64,000 nt of DNA, taken from positions 185,641 to 249,640 of IMG/VR virus record IMGVR_UViG_3300024239_000014. One strand, given 5' to 3'. Below are positions 2,529 through 41,771 of the stretch, one piece after another. The notes beneath the pieces are model-generated. The model saw nothing but the letters and a program-made list of their open reading frames with translations, was not told the DNA's origin and made no database searches. A program made the position numbers and the translations under genes. Position 1 is the first letter of the stretch. The number at the start of each line of letters is the position of its first letter.

Positions 2529-2738
2529 TTAGCTACTGTTGCGTTCACCGACAAGGCGGCGGATGACACCGATCATGGCAGCGACAACCAGGGTTGCACC
2601 GACGACACGTTCAGTGGGGGTGGCACTGCGATCCAACTCAAAACGGATGTCGGTATCAGTACTACCGGTGATATCGTCACTGGTGGTGGAAGTCAGTGCA
2701 ATACCCAGAAAGTTTACGGATTTCTTCACAGTCGACAT
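2529..2738 (-). CDS. small single-pass membrane protein (69 aa)
   Basis: GAGGT RBS; VVGATLVVAAMIGVI followed by RR. Confidence 0.7.
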   Translation of the reverse strand: MSTVKKSVNFLGIALTSTTSDDITGSTDTDIRFELDRSATPTERVVGATLVVAAMIGVIRRLVGERNSS

Positions 2739-2796
2739 GATATTTACCTCGAGTTACGGTTGGTTGTAAAGGAAGGAGATTGGGGGTGCAGATAGA

Positions 2797-2824
2797 TAAT
2801 ATCTGTTTCAAAAACCGTTGGATT
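2797..2824 (-). promoter_or_regulatory. putative early (virion RNAP) promoter
   Basis: AATCC-AACGGTT-TTT-GAAACA-GATAT-TA; same spacing as five other copies. Confidence 0.55.
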
Positions 2825-2825
2825 T

Positions 2826-2878
2826 GCGGCATAAAACAAAAAAAAAGAGAGGGGTCATAACTCCCTCTCTTTTGCCGG
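2826..2878. terminator. bidirectional intrinsic terminator with TGCCG tails
   Basis: AAAAGAGAGGG/CCCTCTCTTTT stem; tails TTTTGCCGG (+) and TTTTATGCCGC (-). Confidence 0.8.
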
Positions 2879-2882
2879 TGGC

Positions 2883-3110
2883 TTAGCCCTCGCTGGGCTC
2901 GCCACCGTTGCCGGCGTACTTGCTGTACGCATAGGCTGCACCGCCGATCACGGCGGCAGCCAAGGCACCGTACCCCACGACCTTGGCGGTCGTGGCCCAC
3001 CAAGAAGACTTGGCAGGTGCTGCGGTAACTGTCGGCATGGGAACAGCGGCGGCTACCGCCTCGGCGGTGGCGGCGATGGCTTCAGCGGCGTTGGTGTTGG
3101 TCTGAGACAT
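2883..3110 (-). CDS. small Ala-rich single-pass membrane protein (75 aa)
   Basis: GAGG RBS; VVGYGALAAAVIGGAAYAY segment; GC3-rich codons. Confidence 0.8.
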   Translation of the reverse strand: MSQTNTNAAEAIAATAEAVAAAVPMPTVTAAPAKSSWWATTAKVVGYGALAAAVIGGAAYAYSKYAGNGGEPSEG

Positions 3111-3186
3111 GATAAATTCCTCGTGTTTTGGGTTTTGGTTCCGGCTTGTGGTAAGTGACTCCCGCCGGAAGGAGTCACCTTTTTGT

Positions 3187-3816: not shown

Positions 3817-5988
3817 TTAGGCCTGCTCTTTGGTCGGAACAGCCTTCAGCGCCACCAGAGCCTTGTCCAGGTTGGTCACGTTGATCACGAACCACACCGG
3901 CAGGTTGTGGACGTGAACGTTACGCGGCTGTACAGACAGCTGGTTGTAAGTGGCGTTGCCACGGCTCACCGGACCGGTGCTGACCAGTTCAGGGATCCAG
4001 TAGTGGTTACCGGAGCTGAGCGGGCAGAAGCCGCTGCGACCCTTGCGGGTGAAGGTGCCGATGATCTTGTTCTGCATGCGAACGTCCGGGGTAGCCAGGA
4101 CTTCGAAGTCCATGCCGATACCAGCGGTGCGCGGGTCACCCTGGATCATCATGTACTGTTGCAGGTTGATATCGGTACCCAGCAGCAGGGTCGGCTTGTC
4201 TTCGGCACCACCGCTGACCTGCTGGAGGGCAGGCAGGTAGTTGGATTCGACGACGGCGCGGTAGGCCACTTCGCGTACGGTGTTCAGGATCAGCGAGTTC
4301 AAGTCGGCCACGCGGTCGGTAGAACGCAGGGTCTGTACCTGAGCAAAGAGATCCAGAGCCACTTCGGCGTAGAACGGGGTTACCAGCCAACGACCAGCAC
4401 CTTCCAGACTGGCGCTGGAATCAGCACCGGCACCGATCAGGTGTTTGTTCTGGGCGCAGAAAGCCTTCAGACCTTCGAGGTAGTTCAGCTGTGCGGCGAT
4501 AGCACGGTTGCTGGTGGCGATGCGAGTCGCGTTCACCAGGTCGTCGAGGCCGACAGAGACGTTCTCTTCAGTGGTGGGCACCTGGACGCTGATCGGAGCG
4601 CCGACCGGGATCGGGGTGTAGTCGGTCTTGTAGCCGCGGTCCAGCAGCAGGCCAGCGGTGCGGCGGTTGCTGTTGATACGGTTGGCTTTCAGATCGATAC
4701 CGACAACGGTGAACACCAGGTCAGCGAGGATCGGGGCCAGGGTGGCATCGGCCGGAGAGATCAGGTCTTTGGTCACGCGGTGATAGGCTTTGCCAGCCGA
4801 CACCGAACCATCGAACTTGTAGTGGCCGGTCTGCACGTTCACGCTACCAGACAGCGACAGATCCAGGTGGATCTGGAACTCAGTGGTGTTCAGGTCAGAC
4901 AGCGGAGCAGGCTGAGCGCCAGCCGGGTTCTTGGTGTCCTTGTCGACGGCCAGTTCGCTGGTCATGGCGGACAGGGTCAGCTCGTAGGCGTCACCAGCAG
5001 GCGCTTTGTACATTTCGAAGCGCTTGAGGTTGGCGGTCGGGAACTTCACGACGCCGACTTCGGTGCCGGCACCGTTGGCCACGCGAACGTACACAGCAGA
5101 AACGGTGATGGCTTCCTGGATCTGATCGGTCTGGTCGTAGGTACCTTCCAGAGCGGCCGGGTTCTGGCTCAGGGCCAGCAGGTCACCAGCGACGCCGATG
5201 GCGATCGGAGCGGTGTTGTAGGTAACACCGTTGACTTCTTTGGCCACCGGGGCCACGAGCGAAGCGGCGACGAACTTGTTCAGGTTGCTGTTGTCAGCCT
5301 GTACGTGCGGGATCAGAGCAGTCGACGGAGCGTCGAGCAGCTTGCTGTCGCGGTAGGCTTCGAGGATGTTCTTGAAGTTCCAGGACTTGACGTCGCCGGA
5401 CAGAGCGCGCTGAGCGCCTTTGAACACGCGGATCACCGGAACTTTGGTAACCACGGCAACCTGGTCAGGGGTCTGCACCACAGTCGGGTAGAAACCTTCG
5501 GCGTAGTTGTCCTGACGGGCAGCGCCGTAGTTCCAGGCAGCAGAGTAGGCAGCCACAACGGTCAGGTCGCGGTTGTCAAAAGCTTCCATGGCGACGTCGG
5601 TGAAGGACACGTCCATGGCGCCGTGGATACCCACGGTGGTCGGCATGATAACGTTGGCACCTTCCATCGACATGGCGGCAGTGGCCAGAGCTTTGGCCTG
5701 GTAACGGTTGGCGCTGGCGGCGCCCATGAAGGCGATCTGAGCGGCTTCGAGAGCAACGGAGTCAGCAGCAGCATCACCAGCGAAGAGACCTTTCAGCTCA
5801 TTCTGGATGTTGCGGCCGGAGGCGACCAGGGCGCTGCGAGCAGTAGGAGTGGCAGATTCGAGCGACAGCAGGGCGCCAACGTCGTCGGCACCAACCACGA
5901 CATCACCACGTTTCTGGAGAGAAACGAGTTCATCAGCAGCCTGACCAATGGACTTGGTCGCGGCGTTCTGGGTATTGAAAATCGACAT
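3817..5988 (-). CDS. major capsid protein (phiKZ gp120-like)
   Basis: 723 aa; strong GC3 codon bias; N-terminal propeptide with A/S-X-E sites (SLES, ALEA, SMEG, AMEAF); FYPTVV and RQD motifs; divergent from the DnaB gene as in phiKZ gp118-120. Confidence 0.9.
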   Translation of the reverse strand: MSIFNTQNAATKSIGQAADELVSLQKRGDVVVGADDVGALLSLESATPTARSALVASGRNIQNELKGLFAGDAAADSVALEAAQIAFMGAASANRYQAKALATAAMSMEGANVIMPTTVGIHGAMDVSFTDVAMEAFDNRDLTVVAAYSAAWNYGAARQDNYAEGFYPTVVQTPDQVAVVTKVPVIRVFKGAQRALSGDVKSWNFKNILEAYRDSKLLDAPSTALIPHVQADNSNLNKFVAASLVAPVAKEVNGVTYNTAPIAIGVAGDLLALSQNPAALEGTYDQTDQIQEAITVSAVYVRVANGAGTEVGVVKFPTANLKRFEMYKAPAGDAYELTLSAMTSELAVDKDTKNPAGAQPAPLSDLNTTEFQIHLDLSLSGSVNVQTGHYKFDGSVSAGKAYHRVTKDLISPADATLAPILADLVFTVVGIDLKANRINSNRRTAGLLLDRGYKTDYTPIPVGAPISVQVPTTEENVSVGLDDLVNATRIATSNRAIAAQLNYLEGLKAFCAQNKHLIGAGADSSASLEGAGRWLVTPFYAEVALDLFAQVQTLRSTDRVADLNSLILNTVREVAYRAVVESNYLPALQQVSGGAEDKPTLLLGTDINLQQYMMIQGDPRTAGIGMDFEVLATPDVRMQNKIIGTFTRKGRSGFCPLSSGNHYWIPELVSTGPVSRGNATYNQLSVQPRNVHVHNLPVWFVINVTNLDKALVALKAVPTKEQA

Positions 5989-14954: not shown

Positions 14955-16220
14955 TCACTTCAATCCGCCGGTCAAATTGCGCATAGCCAAACGCAAAACC
15001 GAACGACCCACCTGCGACAGGTAGTTAGCGTACTCAAGCTGAACTTTGGAGGTCCACGATGAATACGTATTGATGAAGTCGACTGCGGTGCGGTAATAGG
15101 TTACCGGTCCTTTACGAGCTTCATCACCACTGCGCATGTTTGCCACTCGCTTGCGAACGGATTCCAATGCCGCCTCAGCACGACGGCTCTGATCAAGCAC
15201 GTCGCTACTGGTGAAGGTTTTTCCTTTAGCAATGACATCAGCCATCGCTGTGGCCATGGCCGCCACCCCTTCAGCAAAGAACGCCGGAATGACCGCTTCG
15301 GTGTCGTACGCCCGCAGTTGTTCGTAAGTGTCAGTAAAGACGATCTTCGAACGCCGGATCTTCTCAGCGGTGATCAGCACATTACCTTGCTGATTGGTAT
15401 CCCAGTTCACTGAAAAGAAACTGTGATTCCAGAGCAACGCTTCTGATGCCTGCACCTTGCCAGTCGGACCTGCATCAAAGCGGGTGTCAGAAGCCACAGC
15501 ACGAAAACAGAGGGCTGCGACAGGATTGGCCACCCCTTGGGTCATGGCGTTGCATGCGGCAATCAGGCTGGCTTCAGGTTTGGCGATATCAAACCCATTG
15601 ATGCTGTCAATGAGTCGTTTACCGACATTCGGCATCTGCTTGCTGTAATGGACAAACAAGGCATCTGCAAAAGTGTTCAGTTTATCAATCGCGTTGGTAA
15701 CGTCAGAATGAGTCGCCGGGAGCTTATTACCTGCTGCGAGGTAGCGAGCTTCAATCCCTAAACGAATTTCGCCTTTAGGGACGAGGTGGGTACGGCGTTT
15801 TGCCGCCTCGGCAGCGCGACGCAGTCCTCGCTCGCAATTCGTAAGCAGGTCCCAGAGTCCGGTAGCTGCTTTACGAATCATTGCCCACAACCGCTTAAGG
15901 CCGTCGATGATCTTCTCGAGAATCATCAGCGCACCGTCAACGAAACCTTCAGCGCTGTAAGACGTCATGACAGCATCGGGATTCAGGCCAGGTTCATCCA
16001 GCCCTACGATCGCCAACATACGTGCCTTATCGGCGCTCAGATCCAAACCTTCCAGCACCAGCGCTACTGCTTCGAGATTGAATGACTTACGCGAGGCTTC
16101 ATCCAAGGTATTGTGCATCTGATCGACGCGTTTAATCTCTTCGGTGGCTTCAGTGGCCTTGTCGACGAGAGCATCTTCTTCCAACACGTCGATGTACGTA
16201 TCAGGATTAAGTTCAGACAT
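14955..16220 (-). CDS. internal head protein with cleavable propeptide (phiKZ gp93-97 family-like)
   Basis: Likelier start MSELNPD at 16220 (GAGG). Acidic N-terminus, YSAEG site, then helical LKRLWAMIRK segment. Confidence 0.65.
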   Translation of the reverse strand: MSELNPDTYIDVLEEDALVDKATEATEEIKRVDQMHNTLDEASRKSFNLEAVALVLEGLDLSADKARMLAIVGLDEPGLNPDAVMTSYSAEGFVDGALMILEKIIDGLKRLWAMIRKAATGLWDLLTNCERGLRRAAEAAKRRTHLVPKGEIRLGIEARYLAAGNKLPATHSDVTNAIDKLNTFADALFVHYSKQMPNVGKRLIDSINGFDIAKPEASLIAACNAMTQGVANPVAALCFRAVASDTRFDAGPTGKVQASEALLWNHSFFSVNWDTNQQGNVLITAEKIRRSKIVFTDTYEQLRAYDTEAVIPAFFAEGVAAMATAMADVIAKGKTFTSSDVLDQSRRAEAALESVRKRVANMRSGDEARKGPVTYYRTAVDFINTYSSWTSKVQLEYANYLSQVGRSVLRLAMRNLTGGLK

Positions 16221-16226
16221 AGTGTC

Positions 16227-16265
16227 CTCGCTGACACAGAGGGAGGCCATTAGGCCTCCCTCTGG
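16227..16265 (-). terminator. hairpin between head protein genes
   Basis: AGAGGGAGGCC-loop-GGCCTCCCTCT (16238-16263); no U-tract. Confidence 0.5.
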
Positions 16266-16269
16266 TGGA

Positions 16270-17499
16270 TTACGTCTGTGCCCGCTTACCGCCCCAGTTC
16301 GCCAACACCAGGTTGACGTACTTGACTGCATAGCTGGTCACGTTGATCGCGTAGACCGAGAAGTCTTTGCCGAGGGTAATGGTGTCACGTCCGATGGCGC
16401 GAGCACGTGCCTGCACTTCGGCAGTATTGTGACCACCAGCAGGACCTTCCACTTTCGACCATTCGGTTTCGAACTTCTTGACCGCGTTTTCGATGCCGAG
16501 CCAGTTCTTCTCGTGGCCGTTGATGGCGGTCAGGACTGCTTTACAGTCTTCGAGGATGGCTTTCATCTCGCTCTTCGACAGCATGGTGCCCACAGGGTCC
16601 TTGGCGTCGGCGGTGACTTCCACCACGAACTTCAGAGCGTTACCAGTGTTCTCGTCTTCTTCACCGACGAGGGTGAAACGAGCATGACCTGGCAAGTTGC
16701 TGACGTTGGCGAGATGTTTCAGCATGGCTTCTTCGCTGTCACCATCGAGGTCTGGTGCTGCGTCGAACTTGCCGAGGGCTTCAACCATCTTGGGCATGTA
16801 CTCGTTGTACACCTTTTCCGACACAGCTTTCAGTGCACCGGTGCTGGCTTTCAGGTGGACGAAAGACTTCTCGCCTTTCTGACCCAGGTACTTGATGTAC
16901 AGGCCGAGTGACTTGTCGGTGAACGAGCCAACCAGACTCTTCTCTGCGTCCAGGGCCTCGACCTTCTTCATCGCAGCGTCGATGCGGACCACGCAGCCAC
17001 GGCAGAACTGCTTGACCTTGATCCAGATGTCCTTCATCTTGGTCACCAGCTTCTTCAGCCACTCGATGACTTTCGCGTAGGCCTGGGACAGCTTTTCTTT
17101 CACGCTTTCCAGCGACACCTGGGTGGACTGGTAGCGAGTGGTGATGCCACCGAAGTGCTCGGTGGACAGATGGGCGACGGGTGCCAACTTCAGCTGTTTC
17201 ACAGCGGTAGCAAAGGACATCTGCGCCAGCTGAGCTTCGCGAGCGGTCAGACCGCCGGCAGGCAGTGCCGATTCCATTACCATCACGAGTGACTCGAGCG
17301 TGGCGGTGGCTTCGACTTCGGTTTCTTCGGTTGCGGTATCAGTAACTTCCACCGTTTGGACTTCGGTTACGATTTCCGCGTGGACGGCGTCGACATCGAT
17401 CTGATCGGCAGGAACCTGCTCAGGATCAACGGCGACTTCCTGCGACTCAAGGGTCACGAAACCCTTGCTCTTCAGCAGACTGTTCAGCAATTCGGACAT
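16270..17499 (-). CDS. internal head protein with cleavable propeptide
   Basis: Likelier start MSELLNSLL at 17499 (GGAG). TLES/VMES/STEH/SLES sites then KVIEWLKKL helix. Confidence 0.7.
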   Translation of the reverse strand: MSELLNSLLKSKGFVTLESQEVAVDPEQVPADQIDVDAVHAEIVTEVQTVEVTDTATEETEVEATATLESLVMVMESALPAGGLTAREAQLAQMSFATAVKQLKLAPVAHLSTEHFGGITTRYQSTQVSLESVKEKLSQAYAKVIEWLKKLVTKMKDIWIKVKQFCRGCVVRIDAAMKKVEALDAEKSLVGSFTDKSLGLYIKYLGQKGEKSFVHLKASTGALKAVSEKVYNEYMPKMVEALGKFDAAPDLDGDSEEAMLKHLANVSNLPGHARFTLVGEEDENTGNALKFVVEVTADAKDPVGTMLSKSEMKAILEDCKAVLTAINGHEKNWLGIENAVKKFETEWSKVEGPAGGHNTAEVQARARAIGRDTITLGKDFSVYAINVTSYAVKYVNLVLANWGGKRAQT

Positions 17500-32942: not shown

Positions 32943-34250
32943 TTAAGAAATACAGGTCGCGAGGTTAAGTTTAGTGATCTTTAGTGCCGTACCGTGCATC
33001 TTTTTCATGAAGATGTACATGAACTGAGATGGGGCTTCTGCGGCCACGTTGGCAATGGCATTCGGCGTGTTGATAAAAGATTCACCAAAACACGTGGAAC
33101 AAATGTCGCCGTTACCGATCTTGCAGGTCGCAGGGTCGCGCATCAGGACGGTTTTGTCGATCAAATCCTTCGCATTCTCTGGCATGATCTTCACCAACGC
33201 ACCATCGATCATTGCGAAGTTATTGTAAAACCGCTTGACCGTTTGCTTGGTGATTCGACGCGGAATGTAAACCGTGGTCTTGCAATCGCCGACAATCAGA
33301 CGTGTGTTCTGATAACGACGATAAAACAGTTTCACCCCTTCGCCACCGAGCGCAGTATTGGCACCGCGGTTAAACGACCCCAGACGAGCGGAGTTGTTCA
33401 TTTCGGAGAAGCGGTTGAAATCCCACCCTTCGGCCAGCGACTTGGTAATGAGGGCAAAGGTGCCATCATCGTGGAATGACATCTCCACACCAAAGATCAC
33501 TTGGTTACGTAGCAAGATGGTATCGAACTGCTTGTTCTTGATCATGAACGACGCGCCCGGATCGTTCTTGAAATCTTCTTTAAGGGCGTCGACCAGCTGT
33601 TTGATAATCCCGGCGACAACGGTCAGGTTATCAAGTTCGTGCTTATGCTCTTCGAGCAGGCGGTCACGCAAAGCGAGAATGGCTTTGCTCGGTACCAACA
33701 TACGGCGTGTGCTGGATGCCACTGCGATCGAAGACATGTTGCCGATGATGTTGAACATCACGTCTTGATGCTGGTAGACCTGGGTTACTGTAACCTTACC
33801 AGGAGGAACCGGTTCACCATCAGCGGGAGTATCCACGATGAGATCAATGAATAGCCCTTCGATGGCTTCGGGTGACGCTTCTTTATTGTAGTAAGGAATC
33901 GTGTTACCAAAAGGGAAACACAAGGCAGTTGCATTGAAGAACGCGTTAGCAAAAGTCGTGGTTTGTTCTTCAACAACGTTCGCTAAGTCACCTGGTTTGA
34001 TAACGAAGGTTTCGTGGATTGGGTAAAGTCCAGACCCCTTCAATACTCCTTCTTCAAGACCAACCCACTTGGACGCCTCTGCATCGTAATAGTGGTACAC
34101 CCCTTCAAAGGCGTGAAGTCGATACGGATAAAGTTCTTTGTTGGGATCGATCTTACTAAAGTCCACTTCCGTAAACGCACAGAGCAGCCAGCTGCGATAA
34201 CGCCATGCCTCAGCTCTAAGTGCCGCAAGAAAGTATTCAATGCGGTTCAT
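32943..34250 (-). CDS. virion RNA polymerase beta'-like subunit (phiKZ gp80-like)
   Basis: Zn-site RDPATC...DICSTCFG; trigger-loop-like AEAPSQFMYIFMKKMHG. Confidence 0.8.
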   Translation of the reverse strand: MNRIEYFLAALRAEAWRYRSWLLCAFTEVDFSKIDPNKELYPYRLHAFEGVYHYYDAEASKWVGLEEGVLKGSGLYPIHETFVIKPGDLANVVEEQTTTFANAFFNATALCFPFGNTIPYYNKEASPEAIEGLFIDLIVDTPADGEPVPPGKVTVTQVYQHQDVMFNIIGNMSSIAVASSTRRMLVPSKAILALRDRLLEEHKHELDNLTVVAGIIKQLVDALKEDFKNDPGASFMIKNKQFDTILLRNQVIFGVEMSFHDDGTFALITKSLAEGWDFNRFSEMNNSARLGSFNRGANTALGGEGVKLFYRRYQNTRLIVGDCKTTVYIPRRITKQTVKRFYNNFAMIDGALVKIMPENAKDLIDKTVLMRDPATCKIGNGDICSTCFGESFINTPNAIANVAAEAPSQFMYIFMKKMHGTALKITKLNLATCIS

Positions 34251-35178: not shown

Positions 35179-35616
35179 ATGCCTGAAAACGCAAAGCCGC
35201 GCCGTAAATACGTCCCCAAGACCTCCAACAAAATGGGTGCATGGGACCAGGCGCGCGCCATCCAACAAGAATCACGCAACCTGCTGTCGGTCGTCCCGAG
35301 TGTAGGTCGCGCCATCCGCCAGAAGATGGAGAGCGGCGAACCGTACGATCGGGAGCGCCTGACCGAGCTAGCCAATCTATTTAAGAAAGACGTCGATCTC
35401 TACAGCGCGGAGATCGACCAGATGGACACGCTGCTGGCATCGAAGTCCGGCGATTTTAGCGATGACGACGATCTGGCCACCGCACTGGAACTGGCCATGC
35501 AGTACAGCAATTGGAATGAACGCTGGGCCATGGTGGTTATCCCCACTATCACCGAAATCCTCAATCACTGCCGCCCCGCTGCGGCCACCCCGTCGACTGT
35601 AGAAGGAAGTGCTTAA
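35179..35616 (+). CDS. conserved helical protein (phiKZ gp78 position)
   Basis: 145 aa; GGAG RBS; stop overlaps the next start. Confidence 0.65.
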   Translation: MPENAKPRRKYVPKTSNKMGAWDQARAIQQESRNLLSVVPSVGRAIRQKMESGEPYDRERLTELANLFKKDVDLYSAEIDQMDTLLASKSGDFSDDDDLATALELAMQYSNWNERWAMVVIPTITEILNHCRPAAATPSTVEGSA

Positions 35617-37193
35617 TGGCCACCATTGACGAAAACGATCTGCCGAAACCACCTCACGTGGAAGATCAAGCCGAACCGACTGCTGCTCAGGAATCGGAAG
35701 CTGCCGATAAAGCAGCAAAAAACGAAACGGACGAGCAGGGCGATATCATCCAGCCGGCCAAACCACGCCAGGGTAAGGTTAGCGGGAAGTCGCCACTCCA
35801 CCCGATGGCAGACGGTGCCCTTTCTGCAGAAGAACCGCACATCATTCTGCCAGGTACCGATTCGATCACCTACAAGCAAGATGTGATGTCAACCATCAAC
35901 CCGCTTCCTGAAAAGGAAATGGAGCGGTTGTTCACATCGGATTGGGGCGTCAGCTTGGTGTTGGGCGAAGAGCTCGCTTATCGCAATGACGACCTGGCAG
36001 AAGCACTCGATCGCACCGATTCCATCTGGGATCATGGGCAAATGCACGATGGTCGAAAGATCAACATCGGTCGCTATTCGCCTAAGTCGGCCGGTGGTCA
36101 GGAGATCTCCGGGCTGATGGCGGTCGCTCGCTTGGCAGCCAGTCAGAACATCGGTAAACCCGTCACCGCACCTCTCTGGCACAGTGGCATTTGGGTGACC
36201 CTGCGCCCTTCCCAGAACATCGACCTGATGAACATGGAAGCCAAAGTCAGTTCGCTCAAAGCAGCGTTTGGTCGCCAGACTCGTGGTCGTGTGTTCTCGC
36301 AAAGCGATGTCTACCTCAAGATGACGGTGGTGGATTTTGTACTCGATCACATCGAGGCTACCACTGCACCATCCGGTGATAAAGCTGATCTGAAAGCACT
36401 GATCAAGATCACCGACATCCCGCTGTTAGTTTGGGCGATGGCTAGCGCTAACCACCCCCAAGGACACTACTACGCTCAGGCATGTACAGCCAAGCCAGGC
36501 AAGTGTAGTTACGTGGCTCGTGGTAAGGTCAACATCCCTGATCTGCTCTATGTAGACAGTTCTGCCTTTACGGACAATCAACGTAAAGCAATGCTGTCAC
36601 CAACACAAAAGGTGTCGAAGGCCGAAAGCCTGGAAGCATACCAGCTTGAATTCAACACCCGTGGTCTGGACTCTTTCGTCTACAATGACACATTGAAGAT
36701 CGAGTTCCAGGTACCCTCTATCGCCGACTATGAAACCGCCGGCTACAGCTGGGTGGCTGAGCTGGAGAAGGCTTACGAGTCACTCTTCGGTCGCGGCGTT
36801 GCATTGGAGCAACGAGGTGAGTACATTACCCAGCAAGCAGAACTGGCCGCACTGCGCCAGTATTCTCACTGGGTGAAGCGTATCGTCTTCCTTGATCCTA
36901 ATGGTGACGAGGGCGACTGGATCGAAAACCGTGACGTTCTGGTCAAGAACATCGAACGTCTGACGGATGATCCGGAATTCAGTAAAGCGTACTACACGCA
37001 TGTGATCAGTTTTATCAACCAAGTCACAGCGGCAGTCACAGCGATTCCGAATTTCGTTTGTCCGTCGTGCGGGAGCCGTCAACCTACTGACGAAGGTCGT
37101 TTCCAACACCTGGTACCGGTAGACATGGCTCAGGCTTTTTTCACCCTCGCCCGCCTGCGAGTATTGACGGCAGTCAGATCGAGCAACATCTAA
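35616..37193 (+). CDS. baseplate-hub/tail assembly chaperone-like protein (phiKZ gp77 position)
   Basis: 525 aa; PLWHSGIWVTLRP motif; C-terminal CPSCG as in T4 gp26/gp51-type proteins. Confidence 0.55.
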   Translation: MATIDENDLPKPPHVEDQAEPTAAQESEAADKAAKNETDEQGDIIQPAKPRQGKVSGKSPLHPMADGALSAEEPHIILPGTDSITYKQDVMSTINPLPEKEMERLFTSDWGVSLVLGEELAYRNDDLAEALDRTDSIWDHGQMHDGRKINIGRYSPKSAGGQEISGLMAVARLAASQNIGKPVTAPLWHSGIWVTLRPSQNIDLMNMEAKVSSLKAAFGRQTRGRVFSQSDVYLKMTVVDFVLDHIEATTAPSGDKADLKALIKITDIPLLVWAMASANHPQGHYYAQACTAKPGKCSYVARGKVNIPDLLYVDSSAFTDNQRKAMLSPTQKVSKAESLEAYQLEFNTRGLDSFVYNDTLKIEFQVPSIADYETAGYSWVAELEKAYESLFGRGVALEQRGEYITQQAELAALRQYSHWVKRIVFLDPNGDEGDWIENRDVLVKNIERLTDDPEFSKAYYTHVISFINQVTAAVTAIPNFVCPSCGSRQPTDEGRFQHLVPVDMAQAFFTLARLRVLTAVRSSNI

Positions 37194-37615
37194 CCAGTGC
37201 TCGGTTTAACATCGATAATGCCGGTAGGGTCATCACTCAACCTGAAGCGGTCCTGGACGTACTAAACGGCGTTCCAGGGCCCTTGGATCCAGTGATGGCG
37301 AGATTGGTACTGGATGTGGCGTATCATCGCGCTTACGGGCTAAATGAGGGGATTGACGTAAACAATCCCCTAAACCCTGTGCTGGTGAGACCCAAGGTCA
37401 TCCATACTGAAGATCCATTGTACACGTTTTCCAGACACTTCATGAAGTCAAAGGTAGGAGAGTATTTCCATATCTCCTTCATTGAATTCATGCGTTTACC
37501 GCCTTACCTTTGTGAGTACTTGCTCGACCTGGCAACCAAACGCACTGAGGCCGATGGCCAAGCGGTGGGGAGTCAGGTCGACAAGCTCAAGGCCCTTGAA
37601 AGAGGTAAACCGTAA
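37136..37615 (+). CDS. -1 frameshift extension of the upstream gene (gpGT/gp51-like C-terminal domain)
   Basis: Slippery T TTT TTC at 37136-37142. The -1 frame is open 37091-37615 with no ATG/GTG/TTG before 37283 and no clear RBS there. Confidence 0.6.
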   Translation, partial: FFHPRPPASIDGSQIEQHLTSARFNIDNAGRVITQPEAVLDVLNGVPGPLDPVMARLVLDVAYHRAYGLNEGIDVNNPLNPVLVRPKVIHTEDPLYTFSRHFMKSKVGEYFHISFIEFMRLPPYLCEYLLDLATKRTEADGQAVGSQVDKLKALERGKP

Positions 37616-37640
37616 AAGGTGGAAAGGAGACAAGAACCCC

Positions 37641-38084
37641 ATGATTGTCTACGAAGGACCTGGTGATATCTTCCGTAGTCCAGCGCAGACTTTGGTCTGT
37701 CCTGTCAACACGAAAGGCGTAATGGGGAACGGATTGGCGTTGGCCTTTAGTCAGCGCTTTCCGGGTTTGTTAGATGTGTACAAGGAATATTGCCAGAGCG
37801 GGCAGTTTAAAGTCAATAGTCTGTTACTGTTAAACCGTGTGTTGTGTTTTCCAACCAAAGATGAATTTTGGCGCGCTAGTCAGCTAGAATGGATTGATGC
37901 CAATCTGGCGAAGCTAGCTGCCACGTACATGCAGCATGACATCCGATCATTAGCCGTACCTGGTCTTGGGTGTGGTAAAGGTCAGTTGTCGTTGTCTGAA
38001 GTCGGACCACTGGTGTATCAACACCTTGACCCGTTACCGATTGACGTGTACTTCTATACGTCACGGGCACCGCACATGCGTTAG
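37641..38084 (+). CDS. macrodomain protein (DarG/Appr-1-p processing type)
   Basis: Start MIVYEGPGDIF at 37641 (AGGAG). VCPVNTKGVMGNGLA, CFPTK...W and AVPGLGCGKGQL motifs. Confidence 0.85.
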   Translation: MIVYEGPGDIFRSPAQTLVCPVNTKGVMGNGLALAFSQRFPGLLDVYKEYCQSGQFKVNSLLLLNRVLCFPTKDEFWRASQLEWIDANLAKLAATYMQHDIRSLAVPGLGCGKGQLSLSEVGPLVYQHLDPLPIDVYFYTSRAPHMR

Positions 38085-40244: not shown

Positions 40245-41771
40245 TTAAATAGAGTACCCGGAATTATACACCAGGTGACTCAAACATTTCCCTTTGAAGT
40301 AGTCCATCTTTCGGTTGTGATAGTCTACGTGTTTAGGGATGTCGCTGCAGAAGATGTAGTAGAACTCCGGGTTAACATCCGGCCAATCTTTCAACCGACG
40401 GAGACGACCTTTGACCTGCTCATTGGCAGAAGGTGAATCCATCGAATTGGACATGATGGCAATCCGTAACCCAGGAATATCCACACCTGTACCGGCAGAC
40501 AAAACCGTTGACACCGTGATGTCATTGGTAAGCATGTCGTCGTAGACATCTTCTTGCGTGTAGCGTCCAATTTTGAGTTGTGGGTACTTAGCACGCAGGC
40601 GCTTCATGTACAACGTACAGAAGTCGACAGAAGACGCAAAGACCAAACAGCGCTGCCCAGGTTCCCTGACTTGGATGTACTTTCGCAGTACGATTTCATC
40701 CAAGAAGGTCATGTACTTCTCGAGGCTGCGTTTGTTCTTCATCAGCCACTGTTCGAATACCACATGGCTGTAAGCCCCCTTGTATCCTTTACAGCGGATC
40801 TTCCGAGGCTCGTCAGCATGGTACGCCAGACCCACCACATTGATGTATCGATCGTACTCCAAACCATCGTAACGGTCGTTCATCGGATAAGCAATCTGCC
40901 GCATCCGACGTAAGAACGCTTCATTGGCATCGAGGGTGGCCGATAAATACACCGCCTTTGTGATGTTCGTGTAGCAATCCATCTTGAAGTTCAGTGCACT
41001 GTTTTTGTGCACTTCATCGATGACTCGATACCCGAGACCTAAGAGTGCGTAGAGCTCCTCGGGACGGCAGACAGTCTCTTCTGCAAACTTGGGATTGGAC
41101 TCGTAGGCCTTAATCAGCAACATGATCGTTGTCGACGTAATGACATACGCCGATGCATGGTTTTCACCGCTGGCTTTGGTCAGCAAGGCTGCCTTCAAGG
41201 CTTTAAGACCTTTGATCAGCAGGATGTCACCACGCTTGTGGTGAAAAACCGTTTCCAGTTCGGTATACCACATGTCGGCATACATCGCCGGTACGACCAC
41301 TGCAAACTTTTCACCAATCTTTGCGGCAGCAAACAACGATGTCTTTGTCTTTCCTTTGCCTGTTTGCATGGTAGCCACACGGATGGACTTACCAGGTTCG
41401 ACCAAGAAATCAACGATGGGTACCTGATAATCAAGTGGCTTGAAATGCTCACGCATCACAAGCGACGAGGCCTCGCCTTTAGGCACATCGTGAAAGGCGT
41501 AGATTAGAGCATGATCGCTGTACCCACAGTCGGTCATGTACCGTTTGAATTCTGGCAGGACGTTTCGATGAAACCAGTATTCGGTCTGGCCATCCGAAAC
41601 TCCGCCAAAAAAGTCGCCAGGCCGTTTTTCAACACGACCTCCAGGTAACCGCTCGAACTCCATCTTGGTAAACGATTCAGCGAACCGTGCCAGACGTGGA
41701 ATGAGTTCGTAGCGGTACCCAGAGACTCGAAAGCCATGGCTGTAGACGTCAACACGACCTCTACATGTCAT
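40245..41771 (-). CDS. SF2 (UvsW-like) DNA helicase (phiKZ gp75-like)
   Basis: QTGKGKT, VIDEVH, SAT, GTGVDIPGL and QVKGRLRR motifs. Confidence 0.85.
   Translation of the reverse strand: MTCRGRVDVYSHGFRVSGYRYELIPRLARFAESFTKMEFERLPGGRVEKRPGDFFGGVSDGQTEYWFHRNVLPEFKRYMTDCGYSDHALIYAFHDVPKGEASSLVMREHFKPLDYQVPIVDFLVEPGKSIRVATMQTGKGKTKTSLFAAAKIGEKFAVVVPAMYADMWYTELETVFHHKRGDILLIKGLKALKAALLTKASGENHASAYVITSTTIMLLIKAYESNPKFAEETVCRPEELYALLGLGYRVIDEVHKNSALNFKMDCYTNITKAVYLSATLDANEAFLRRMRQIAYPMNDRYDGLEYDRYINVVGLAYHADEPRKIRCKGYKGAYSHVVFEQWLMKNKRSLEKYMTFLDEIVLRKYIQVREPGQRCLVFASSVDFCTLYMKRLRAKYPQLKIGRYTQEDVYDDMLTNDITVSTVLSAGTGVDIPGLRIAIMSNSMDSPSANEQVKGRLRRLKDWPDVNPEFYYIFCSDIPKHVDYHNRKMDYFKGKCLSHLVYNSGYSI

Follow-up and report, generated by a model that had tools for sequence, protein, structure and literature searches.

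Does the homologue of phiKZ gp77 in a nucleus-forming jumbo phage encode one protein or two? We addressed this question in a 64,000-nucleotide stretch of the IMG/VR virus record IMGVR_UViG_3300024239_000014 (positions 185,641 to 249,640), hereafter the window. An earlier note had proposed, from the sequence alone, that a -1 frameshift joins this gene to the reading frame that follows it. All the sequence features it described are present, and comparative evidence makes recoding very likely, although no protein-level data support it as yet.

The upstream gene, ORF1, lies on the plus strand, like all the features below, at 35616-37193. It encodes 525 residues ending in VDMAQAFFTLARLRVLTAVRSSNI. 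A tblastn search matched it to 243 phage records, including PHIKZ077 (26% identity over 89% of the query). It also matches phrog_4585 with an E-value of 1.6e-105, and the same neighbouring genes are present. ORF1 is thus the homologue of phiKZ gp77, which is Chimalliviridae core gene cg18 in the table of Prichard et al. 2023. The protein has four conserved cysteines (C290, C297, C482 and C485) and a conserved C-terminal D-x4-F-F-x-L motif; its predicted model has a pLDDT of 79 and a pTM of 0.80.

Close to its 3' end, ORF1 carries the slippery heptamer T TTT TTC at 37136-37142. Position 37136 is the third base of the GCT codon of Ala507, followed by Phe508 and Phe509, which places the heptamer in the X XXY YYZ register. 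The zero-frame stop, TAA at 37191-37193, comes 16 codons after the Phe-Phe site; in relatives it lies 8-18 codons after the site in 74/75 distinct loci. The -1 frame is open from 37091 to the TAA at 37613-37615 (17 + 157 codons). Slippage would give a product of 509 + 157 = 666 residues. The expected tryptic junction peptide is FQHLVPVDMAQAFFHPR for the window and FPHLIPIDMLSTFFYFGGLEVK for phiKZ.

The heptamer alone is not beyond chance: ORF1 contains a second one in register (A AAA AAC, 35717), whose -1 frame closes after 17 codons. In contrast, the -1 frame is cut by 29 stops across ORF1 and is then open for 174 codons exactly from the T TTT TTC site, an arrangement that is also conserved across relatives. 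In 90/90 related loci (24-98% identity), the -1 frame is open for 149-184 codons from the same Phe-Phe site, while the +1 frame closes far sooner in most loci. The site reads T TTT TTY in 70/90 loci, and a T-run of 5-9 nt is present in all 75 distinct loci, although 18/75 lack the perfect heptamer. This conservation exceeds what the encoded amino acids require. The first Phe codon is TTT in 75/75 distinct loci, against 35% elsewhere in the same ORFs; the preceding base is T in 60/75, against a background of 28%, and is never C.

The extension encoded in the -1 frame (37142-37615) comprises a proline-rich linker modelled with low confidence (HPRPPAS...), a conserved H-x5-F motif and a predicted helical domain; its model has a pLDDT of 79. 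The frame contains no ATG, GTG or TTG for 47 codons after the site. Its only canonical starts are TTG 37283, GTG 37292 and ATG 37295, the last being used by gene callers to define a 106-residue product. None of the three has the GGAG-like Shine-Dalgarno motif that we read by eye upstream of most of the ten neighbouring gene starts. A product started here would lack the conserved N-terminal third of the family profile.

Several lines of evidence show that the -1 frame is coding upstream of any start. The phrog_12109 profile matches residues 9-151 of the extension. The His...Phe motif (37187-37207, extension residues 16-22) overlaps the ORF1 stop and lies 76 nt upstream of the first canonical start; its Phe is present in 74/75 distinct loci, and in 42/75 there is no ATG, GTG or TTG anywhere upstream of it in the -1 frame. 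Of 11 substitutions between the ORF1 stop and the first start, 9 fall at third positions of the -1 frame, as do 12 of 13 substitutions between strain variants. Loci with an imperfect heptamer more often have a start before the conserved Phe (14/18 against 19/57, Fisher p = 0.002). Finally, 1765 representative clusters match the extension profile. The best 150 of them are 105-186 residues long, and their called N-termini begin at profile positions 1 to 56, the signature of arbitrary start calls.

We looked for elements that might stimulate slippage. In predicted folds, CTCGC (37146-37150) pairs with GCGAG (37157-37161), forming a 5-bp hairpin only 3 nt downstream of the heptamer. This hairpin, already pointed out in the earlier note, is a possible local stimulator. 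It is identical in a relative of about 72% amino-acid identity, but no equivalent conserved structure was found across the family; the downstream 50 nt are at the median (0.59 percentile) of ORF windows. No upstream Shine-Dalgarno-like stimulator is enriched either (3/75, against 7% in controls).

Our best reading, which we consider probable, is a programmed -1 ribosomal frameshift; the slippage itself and its efficiency are inferred. Ribosomes would reach U UUU UUC with the two tRNA-Phe on codons 508-509. Most of them would continue in frame and stop 16 codons later, giving the 525-residue protein, whose last 20 residues form a predicted helix. A fraction would slip back one base and continue for 157 codons, giving a 666-residue protein in which that helix is cut at Phe-Phe and replaced by the proline-rich linker and a helical domain of ~140 residues. 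On this reading, the same device is conserved at the same Phe-Phe codons throughout the Chimalliviridae, phiKZ included, and the small ORFs annotated downstream of gp77 homologues are therefore mostly the 3' part of the long isoform.

The main rival, less likely in our view, is transcriptional slippage, in which the phage or host RNA polymerase adds one U to a fraction of transcripts. The resulting protein is identical, and all the comparative evidence fits this mechanism equally well. T-runs are 7-9 nt in 52/75 distinct loci, the run tends to be extended upstream, and no conserved RNA stimulator was found. On the other hand, the run in the window is only T6, 23/75 loci have T5-T6, and the ribosomal X XXY YYZ register is kept in 70/90 loci. 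Contigs from four phiKZ RNA libraries carry the unedited T-run and run continuously from gp77 through the extension; as contigs drop minority variants, this excludes only majority editing.

It is somewhat more unlikely still that the two frames are separate genes, the second being translated from 37283-37295 or from a non-canonical codon (ATT, ATC or CTG) nearer the ORF1 stop, possibly by termination-reinitiation, with the open frame upstream as an evolutionary remnant. Each of the seven GenBank records we inspected annotates two CDS, and none annotates a join. In RP12 an ATG, and in 201phi2-1 a TTG, overlaps the upstream stop, and 33/75 loci have a canonical start before the conserved Phe, so independent initiation may operate in some lineages (RP12, and the 201phi2-1 annotation). 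However, the first start lies from 2 to 151 codons downstream of the site, in the extreme case at 151 of 154 codons, and usually has no Shine-Dalgarno motif. A separate gene would not need a frame open back to Phe-Phe in 90/90 loci, and it leaves unexplained the codon bias of the T-run. The conserved residues and third-position bias upstream of the starts also speak against it.

A sequencing or assembly indel in this metagenome-assembled record, or a recently broken gene, is refuted for practical purposes, since the same T6 run is found without indels in an independent JGI contig, in Logan contigs at 98% and about 72% amino-acid identity and in contigs of three further metagenome runs, and the two-frame arrangement is shared by 90/90 loci down to 24% identity, cultured and finished phages included. 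No in-frame fusion of gp77 and the extension was seen in these 90 loci or among the best 150 profile hits; the ~686-residue relatives (phrog_8054 type) are longer at the N-terminus, not the C-terminus.

The function of the two products is less certain. The earlier note compared the added domain with the C-termini of gpT and T4 gp51. The resemblance to gpT was not supported by anything we ran, while that to gp51 finds support, at the fold level only. A Foldseek search of BFVD links ORF1 to T4-like baseplate hub (assembly) proteins, with E-values of 7e-6 to 4e-4, a probability of 1.00 and TM-scores by target of 0.5-0.6. An Atlas cluster with PF12322 matches at TM 0.49-0.50, and 86 of 100 named language-model hits are clusters in which PF12322 is a common family. 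Residues ~90-152 of the extension match Gp51_C (PF28602) clusters at TM 0.66-0.75 by target over 52-59 residues, and 60/100 named hits belong to the Gp51_C cluster set; the domain is, however, short and helical.

Profile methods do not confirm either link. Pfam gave no relevant hit for ORF1, the extension or their families, in a library that lacked PF28602. PF12322 matched neither ORF1, nor 21 homologues at E <= 10, nor anything in the whole genome. We aligned both families by hhalign against T4 gp51, T4 gp26 and a 22-member gp51 alignment: for ORF1 only a CxxC stretch was matched (13 columns, with a probability of 22%, against a gp51 alignment), and for the extension nothing. PDB fold searches with both models (Foldseek and VIA-wide) returned nothing meaningful, with a best Z of 4.0, and a complex prediction of ORF1 with the extension gave no answer, which is not evidence either way. 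The Goslar homologue, gp081, is not mentioned in the main text of the Goslar virion structure preprint.

We infer that the gene belongs to, or is a distant structural relative of, the T4 gp26/gp51 baseplate-hub assembly family. T4 gp26 ends in CPECG-x13-FFELL, three residues after FF, sharing the CPxCG...FFxLL layout, while gp51 continues past the equivalent VFKLL into Gp51_C; T4 gp51 homologues carry PF12322 and PF28602 in one chain. The short isoform would then correspond to gp26 and the long one to gp51. In T4, two related products are both needed for one assembly step, but they come from two paralogous genes (plus an internal in-frame start, 26') and not from a frameshift. The T4 proteins are 208-249 residues long, against 525 and 666 here, and the extension is about three times longer than Gp51_C.

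The earlier note also called the pair G/GT-type, which holds as an analogy of design only. As with lambda gpG/gpGT and P2 gpE/E+E', a -1 slip on an X XXY YYZ heptamer near the 3' end of a putative assembly factor gene would give two products sharing their N-terminus, in an arrangement conserved even where sequence is not. We found no sequence or Pfam match to G, T or E; a language-model search places the C-terminus of the extension near P2 GpE (PF06528) clusters at 0.88-0.89, which is a lead only. In the window, as in phiKZ, HPP-Temi and RP12, the gene sits among RNA-polymerase subunit, helicase and macro-domain genes, not between the tube and tape-measure genes. The shared part is ~510 residues rather than ~100-140, and the slip site is inside a conserved Phe-Phe of the protein. 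E. coli dnaX (tau/gamma) and IS3-family orfA/orfAB also set a ratio of two N-coincident products by tandem -1 slippage on a homopolymeric heptamer. Those sites have defined stimulators, an upstream Shine-Dalgarno-like element and a downstream stem-loop or pseudoknot, whereas no conserved stimulator was found here; in dnaX the shifted frame terminates at once, whereas here it adds 157 residues.

While -1 frameshifts of this type are known, we found no mention of one at phiKZ gp77 or in Chimalliviridae in our full-text searches and in the relevant papers we read. If confirmed, it adds a family-wide recoding event to the Chimalliviridae core genome: phiKZ, PhiPA3, 201phi2-1, Goslar and RAY would all make a protein of ~660-700 residues that is absent from the seven annotated records we read. 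It would also correct the arbitrary start calls of a very large set of database ORFs, and it flags a T-run whose length must be preserved when these phages are engineered or resequenced. The fold-level link to T4 gp26/gp51-type hub assembly gives a first functional handle on a core gene listed as hypothetical. It is possible, though we hold this only tentatively, that all nucleus-forming jumbo phages, the model phage phiKZ included, use one recoded core gene to make both a gp26-like and a gp51-like baseplate-hub assembly factor, with the slip site exactly at the FFxLL boundary where gp26 ends and gp51 continues; the >1700 clusters of small hypothetical proteins downstream of gp77 homologues would then be mis-called fragments of the long isoform. 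The locus would offer a natural comparison in which one lineage uses two paralogues and another uses a frameshift to make the same pair of architectures.

The window belongs to a 249,640-bp IMG/VR virus record. Its ORF1 (35616-37193, 525 aa) is the homologue of phiKZ gp77. A tblastn search finds 243 phage records, all below 60% identity, including PHIKZ077 at 26% over 89% of the query, and ORF1 matches phrog_4585 at E 1.6e-105. Prichard et al. 2023 list phiKZ gp077 / RAY gp267 as Chimalliviridae core gene cg18, annotated as 'hypothetical protein'. Near-identical or related sequence to the stretch 36800-37700 occurs in subsurface, soil, groundwater, freshwater and many wastewater metagenomes; this indicates a widespread environmental phage lineage with no cultured representative in the phage collection, where the best hit has 33% aa identity. 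The upstream 145-aa ORF (35179-35616) overlaps the ORF1 start by one base (TAATG, within 35613-35618), which suggests translational coupling of the two genes, as annotated for the corresponding pair in relatives.

The earlier note had proposed a -1 frameshift near the end of this gene, and every detail of its observation is confirmed. The heptamer TTTTTTC lies at 37136-37142 in X XXY YYZ register, and the -1 frame is open from 37091 to 37615. The first ATG/GTG/TTG occurs at codon 47 after the site, the candidate starts being TTG 37283, GTG 37292 and ATG 37295. A CTCGC/GCGAG hairpin lies at 37146-37161, and the two products would be 525 aa and 666 aa long. By eye, most of the ten neighbouring gene starts that we inspected have a GGAG-like Shine-Dalgarno (SD) motif 5-12 nt upstream; in contrast, the three candidate starts have none. 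ORF1 contains only one other in-register heptamer, A AAA AAC at 35717, whose -1 frame closes after 17 codons. It falls within the first ~54 residues (35616-35780), which are acidic/Lys-rich and predicted to be disordered (pLDDT about 30). Along ORF1 the -1 frame is interrupted 29 times, and it then runs for 174 codons from just before the 37136-37142 site.

We collected 90 loci with a gp77 homologue, comprising GenBank phages, metagenome contigs and 80 IMG/VR loci, at 24-98% identity. In 90/90 of them the -1 frame is open for 149-184 codons from the conserved C-terminal D-x4-F-F-x-L motif, whereas the +1 frame closes far sooner in most loci. The zero-frame stop follows 8-18 codons after Phe-Phe in 74/75 distinct loci. 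T TTT TTY is in register in 70/90; the rest are G/A TTT TTY, or T TTT followed by another codon. The T-run is 5-9 nt long in all 75 distinct loci. Codon usage shows selection on the nucleotides themselves: the first Phe codon is TTT in 75/75, whereas TTT makes up 35% of the other Phe codons in the same ORFs, and the preceding base is T in 60/75, against a third-position background of 28%, and is never C. The first canonical start in the -1 frame lies anywhere from 2 to 151 codons after the site (85 of 165 in phiKZ; 151 of 154 in L066, another of these loci) and usually has no SD.

The -1 frame is coding upstream of any start. The family profile phrog_12109 (147 positions) aligns to residues 9-151 of the extension. 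In an alignment of 75 distinct extensions, a His-x5-Phe...Gly motif precedes the first start in most loci; its Phe (window 37205-37207) is present in 74/75, and in 42/75 there is no ATG/GTG/TTG anywhere in the -1 frame upstream of it. Between the ORF1 stop and the first start, 9 of 11 substitutions in three disjoint close pairs are at third positions of the -1 frame. In strain variants of this phage, 12 of 13 substitutions in the extension are at third positions, and the thirteenth is a synonymous CTG>TTG. A profile of the extension finds 1765 representative clusters at E <= 0.001. The best 150 are 105-186 aa long, with called N-termini starting at profile positions 1 to 56, which means that gene callers truncate the domain at whatever start codon happens to occur.

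The tandem Phe codons in X XXY YYZ register fit classical -1 ribosomal slippage, although no family-wide stimulator was found. The 50 nt downstream are no more structured than other windows of the same ORFs (median percentile 0.59; 19% fall in the best decile), and SD-like motifs upstream are not enriched (3/75 against 7% in controls). The window's own 5-bp GC hairpin, 3 nt after the heptamer, is conserved in a relative at about 72% aa identity (L007). L007 keeps the heptamer, and 27 of the 28 nt that follow it are unchanged, while the upstream 65 nt differ at roughly a quarter of positions, as counted from the alignment. However, this stretch is also dual-coding, so its conservation is not informative.

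Transcriptional slippage would give the same protein and is plausible for the T7-T9 runs. In four phiKZ RNA-seq libraries the assembled RNA contigs carry the unedited run and span gp77 plus the extension; this excludes majority editing only. Interestingly, RNA contigs from two phiKZ RNA-seq studies end at 4421 and 4437 of L089, a phiKZ-like IMG/VR locus, on either side of the end of the -1 ORF (last codon ending at 4428), which may mark a transcript 3' end shared by gp77 and its extension. Two other runs carry an extra A after 4429 relative to L089, probably a strain difference. As to independent translation of the downstream ORF, loci with an imperfect heptamer more often have a canonical start before the conserved Phe (14/18 against 19/57, Fisher p = 0.002), as one expects if some lineages have moved toward separate initiation. 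The T-run is not an error: the same T6 run is carried by a JGI contig (L005) and by a Logan contig at 98% aa identity (L006), and contigs of related strains from subsurface and wastewater metagenomes show no indel there.

The predicted model of ORF1 is confident (pLDDT 79, pTM 0.80). Phe508-Phe509 lie in its last helix (504-523), so the shift replaces the end of that helix with a low-confidence Pro-rich linker and a helical domain. PDB searches gave nothing. Against viral predicted structures, after the chimalliviral orthologues and a series of uncharacterised phage proteins, ORF1 hits T4-like 'baseplate hub subunit / hub assembly protein / chaperone' entries of ~250 aa at E 7e-6 to 4e-4. Searches of the Atlas agree: one structural neighbour cluster carries PF12322, and 86 of 100 named language-model neighbours are clusters in which PF12322 is a common family. 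The last ~60 residues of the extension match Gp51_C (PF28602) clusters by structure (TM by target 0.66-0.75), and 60 of 100 named feature hits for the C-terminal part (residues 85-157) are in the Gp51_C cluster set.

The inference of a gp26/gp51 link has clear limits: PF12322 does not hit ORF1, its homologues or the genome, hhalign against a gp51 family alignment finds only a CxxC stretch, Gp51_C is a short helical domain and a complex prediction gave no answer. The Goslar homologue (gp081, according to the core-gene table) is not mentioned in the main text of the Goslar virion structure preprint, which fits a non-structural assembly factor only weakly. T4 gp51 homologues carry PF12322 + PF28602 in one chain. 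T4 gp26 (15803-16429, minus strand, of the T4 locus L097) ends ...CPECGKTHAHVIRGLKEFFELL, with the same CPxCG...FFxLL layout as gp77; T4 gp26 and the gp77 family (window 37059-37150) share a hydrophobic strand, CPxCG, 13-20 residues and then FFxLL. In contrast, gp51 continues after VFKLL into Gp51_C. T4 gene 26 also makes two products, through an internal in-frame start (26'). The similarities to gp26 and gp51 suggest, tentatively, that the short isoform is gp26-like and the long one gp51-like, with the slip site at their point of divergence.

The earlier note had described the locus as probably producing a G/GT-type pair of assembly chaperones. The design indeed matches lambda G/GT and P2 E/E+E', with two N-coincident products from a -1 slip near the 3' end of a putative assembly factor gene. 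Membership nonetheless fails: no homology to G, T or E was found in Pfam or PDB fold searches, and the locus is not between tube and tape-measure genes. It lies among virion and non-virion RNA-polymerase subunit homologues, a helicase and a macro-domain gene. The flanking genes at 32943-34250 and 40245-41771, both on the minus strand, are, by conserved gene order alone with the annotated relatives, counterparts of phiKZ gp80 (annotated as an RNA polymerase beta subunit in HPP-Temi) and of the gp75 RAD2/SF2 helicase; the gp77-type gene therefore sits in a conserved block that is not tail-related. The macro-domain protein (37641-38084, plus strand; PF01661, E 1.6e-7; phrog_335 'phosphatase') lies directly downstream of the extension ORF. 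The same neighbour is present in the 98% and 36% relatives (L006, L008-L012) but absent at this position in phiKZ, HPP-Temi and RP12, so it is probably an accessory gene of this sub-lineage.

None of the seven GenBank records that we read (phiKZ, RP12, HPP-Temi, RAY, pEa_SNUABM_37, 201phi2-1 and PhiPA3) annotates a joined CDS. Instead, annotators gave the downstream ORF ad hoc starts: Erwinia phage RAY gp266 (2568-3116 of locus L093) starts 136 nt inside gp267, and 201phi2-1 gp135 (1225-1686 of locus L095) starts at a TTG overlapping the gp136 stop. Both phages have a perfect T TTT TTT at the Phe-Phe site. We found no description of the frameshift in full-text searches that covered the 2016 recoding review, the core-genome paper and a 2025 review of nucleus-forming phages, although these searches were not exhaustive and prior mention elsewhere cannot be excluded. 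Frameshifting of the -1 type is already known in phages; the present case, probably a further instance, is of above-average interest because it sits in a core gene of a much-studied family.
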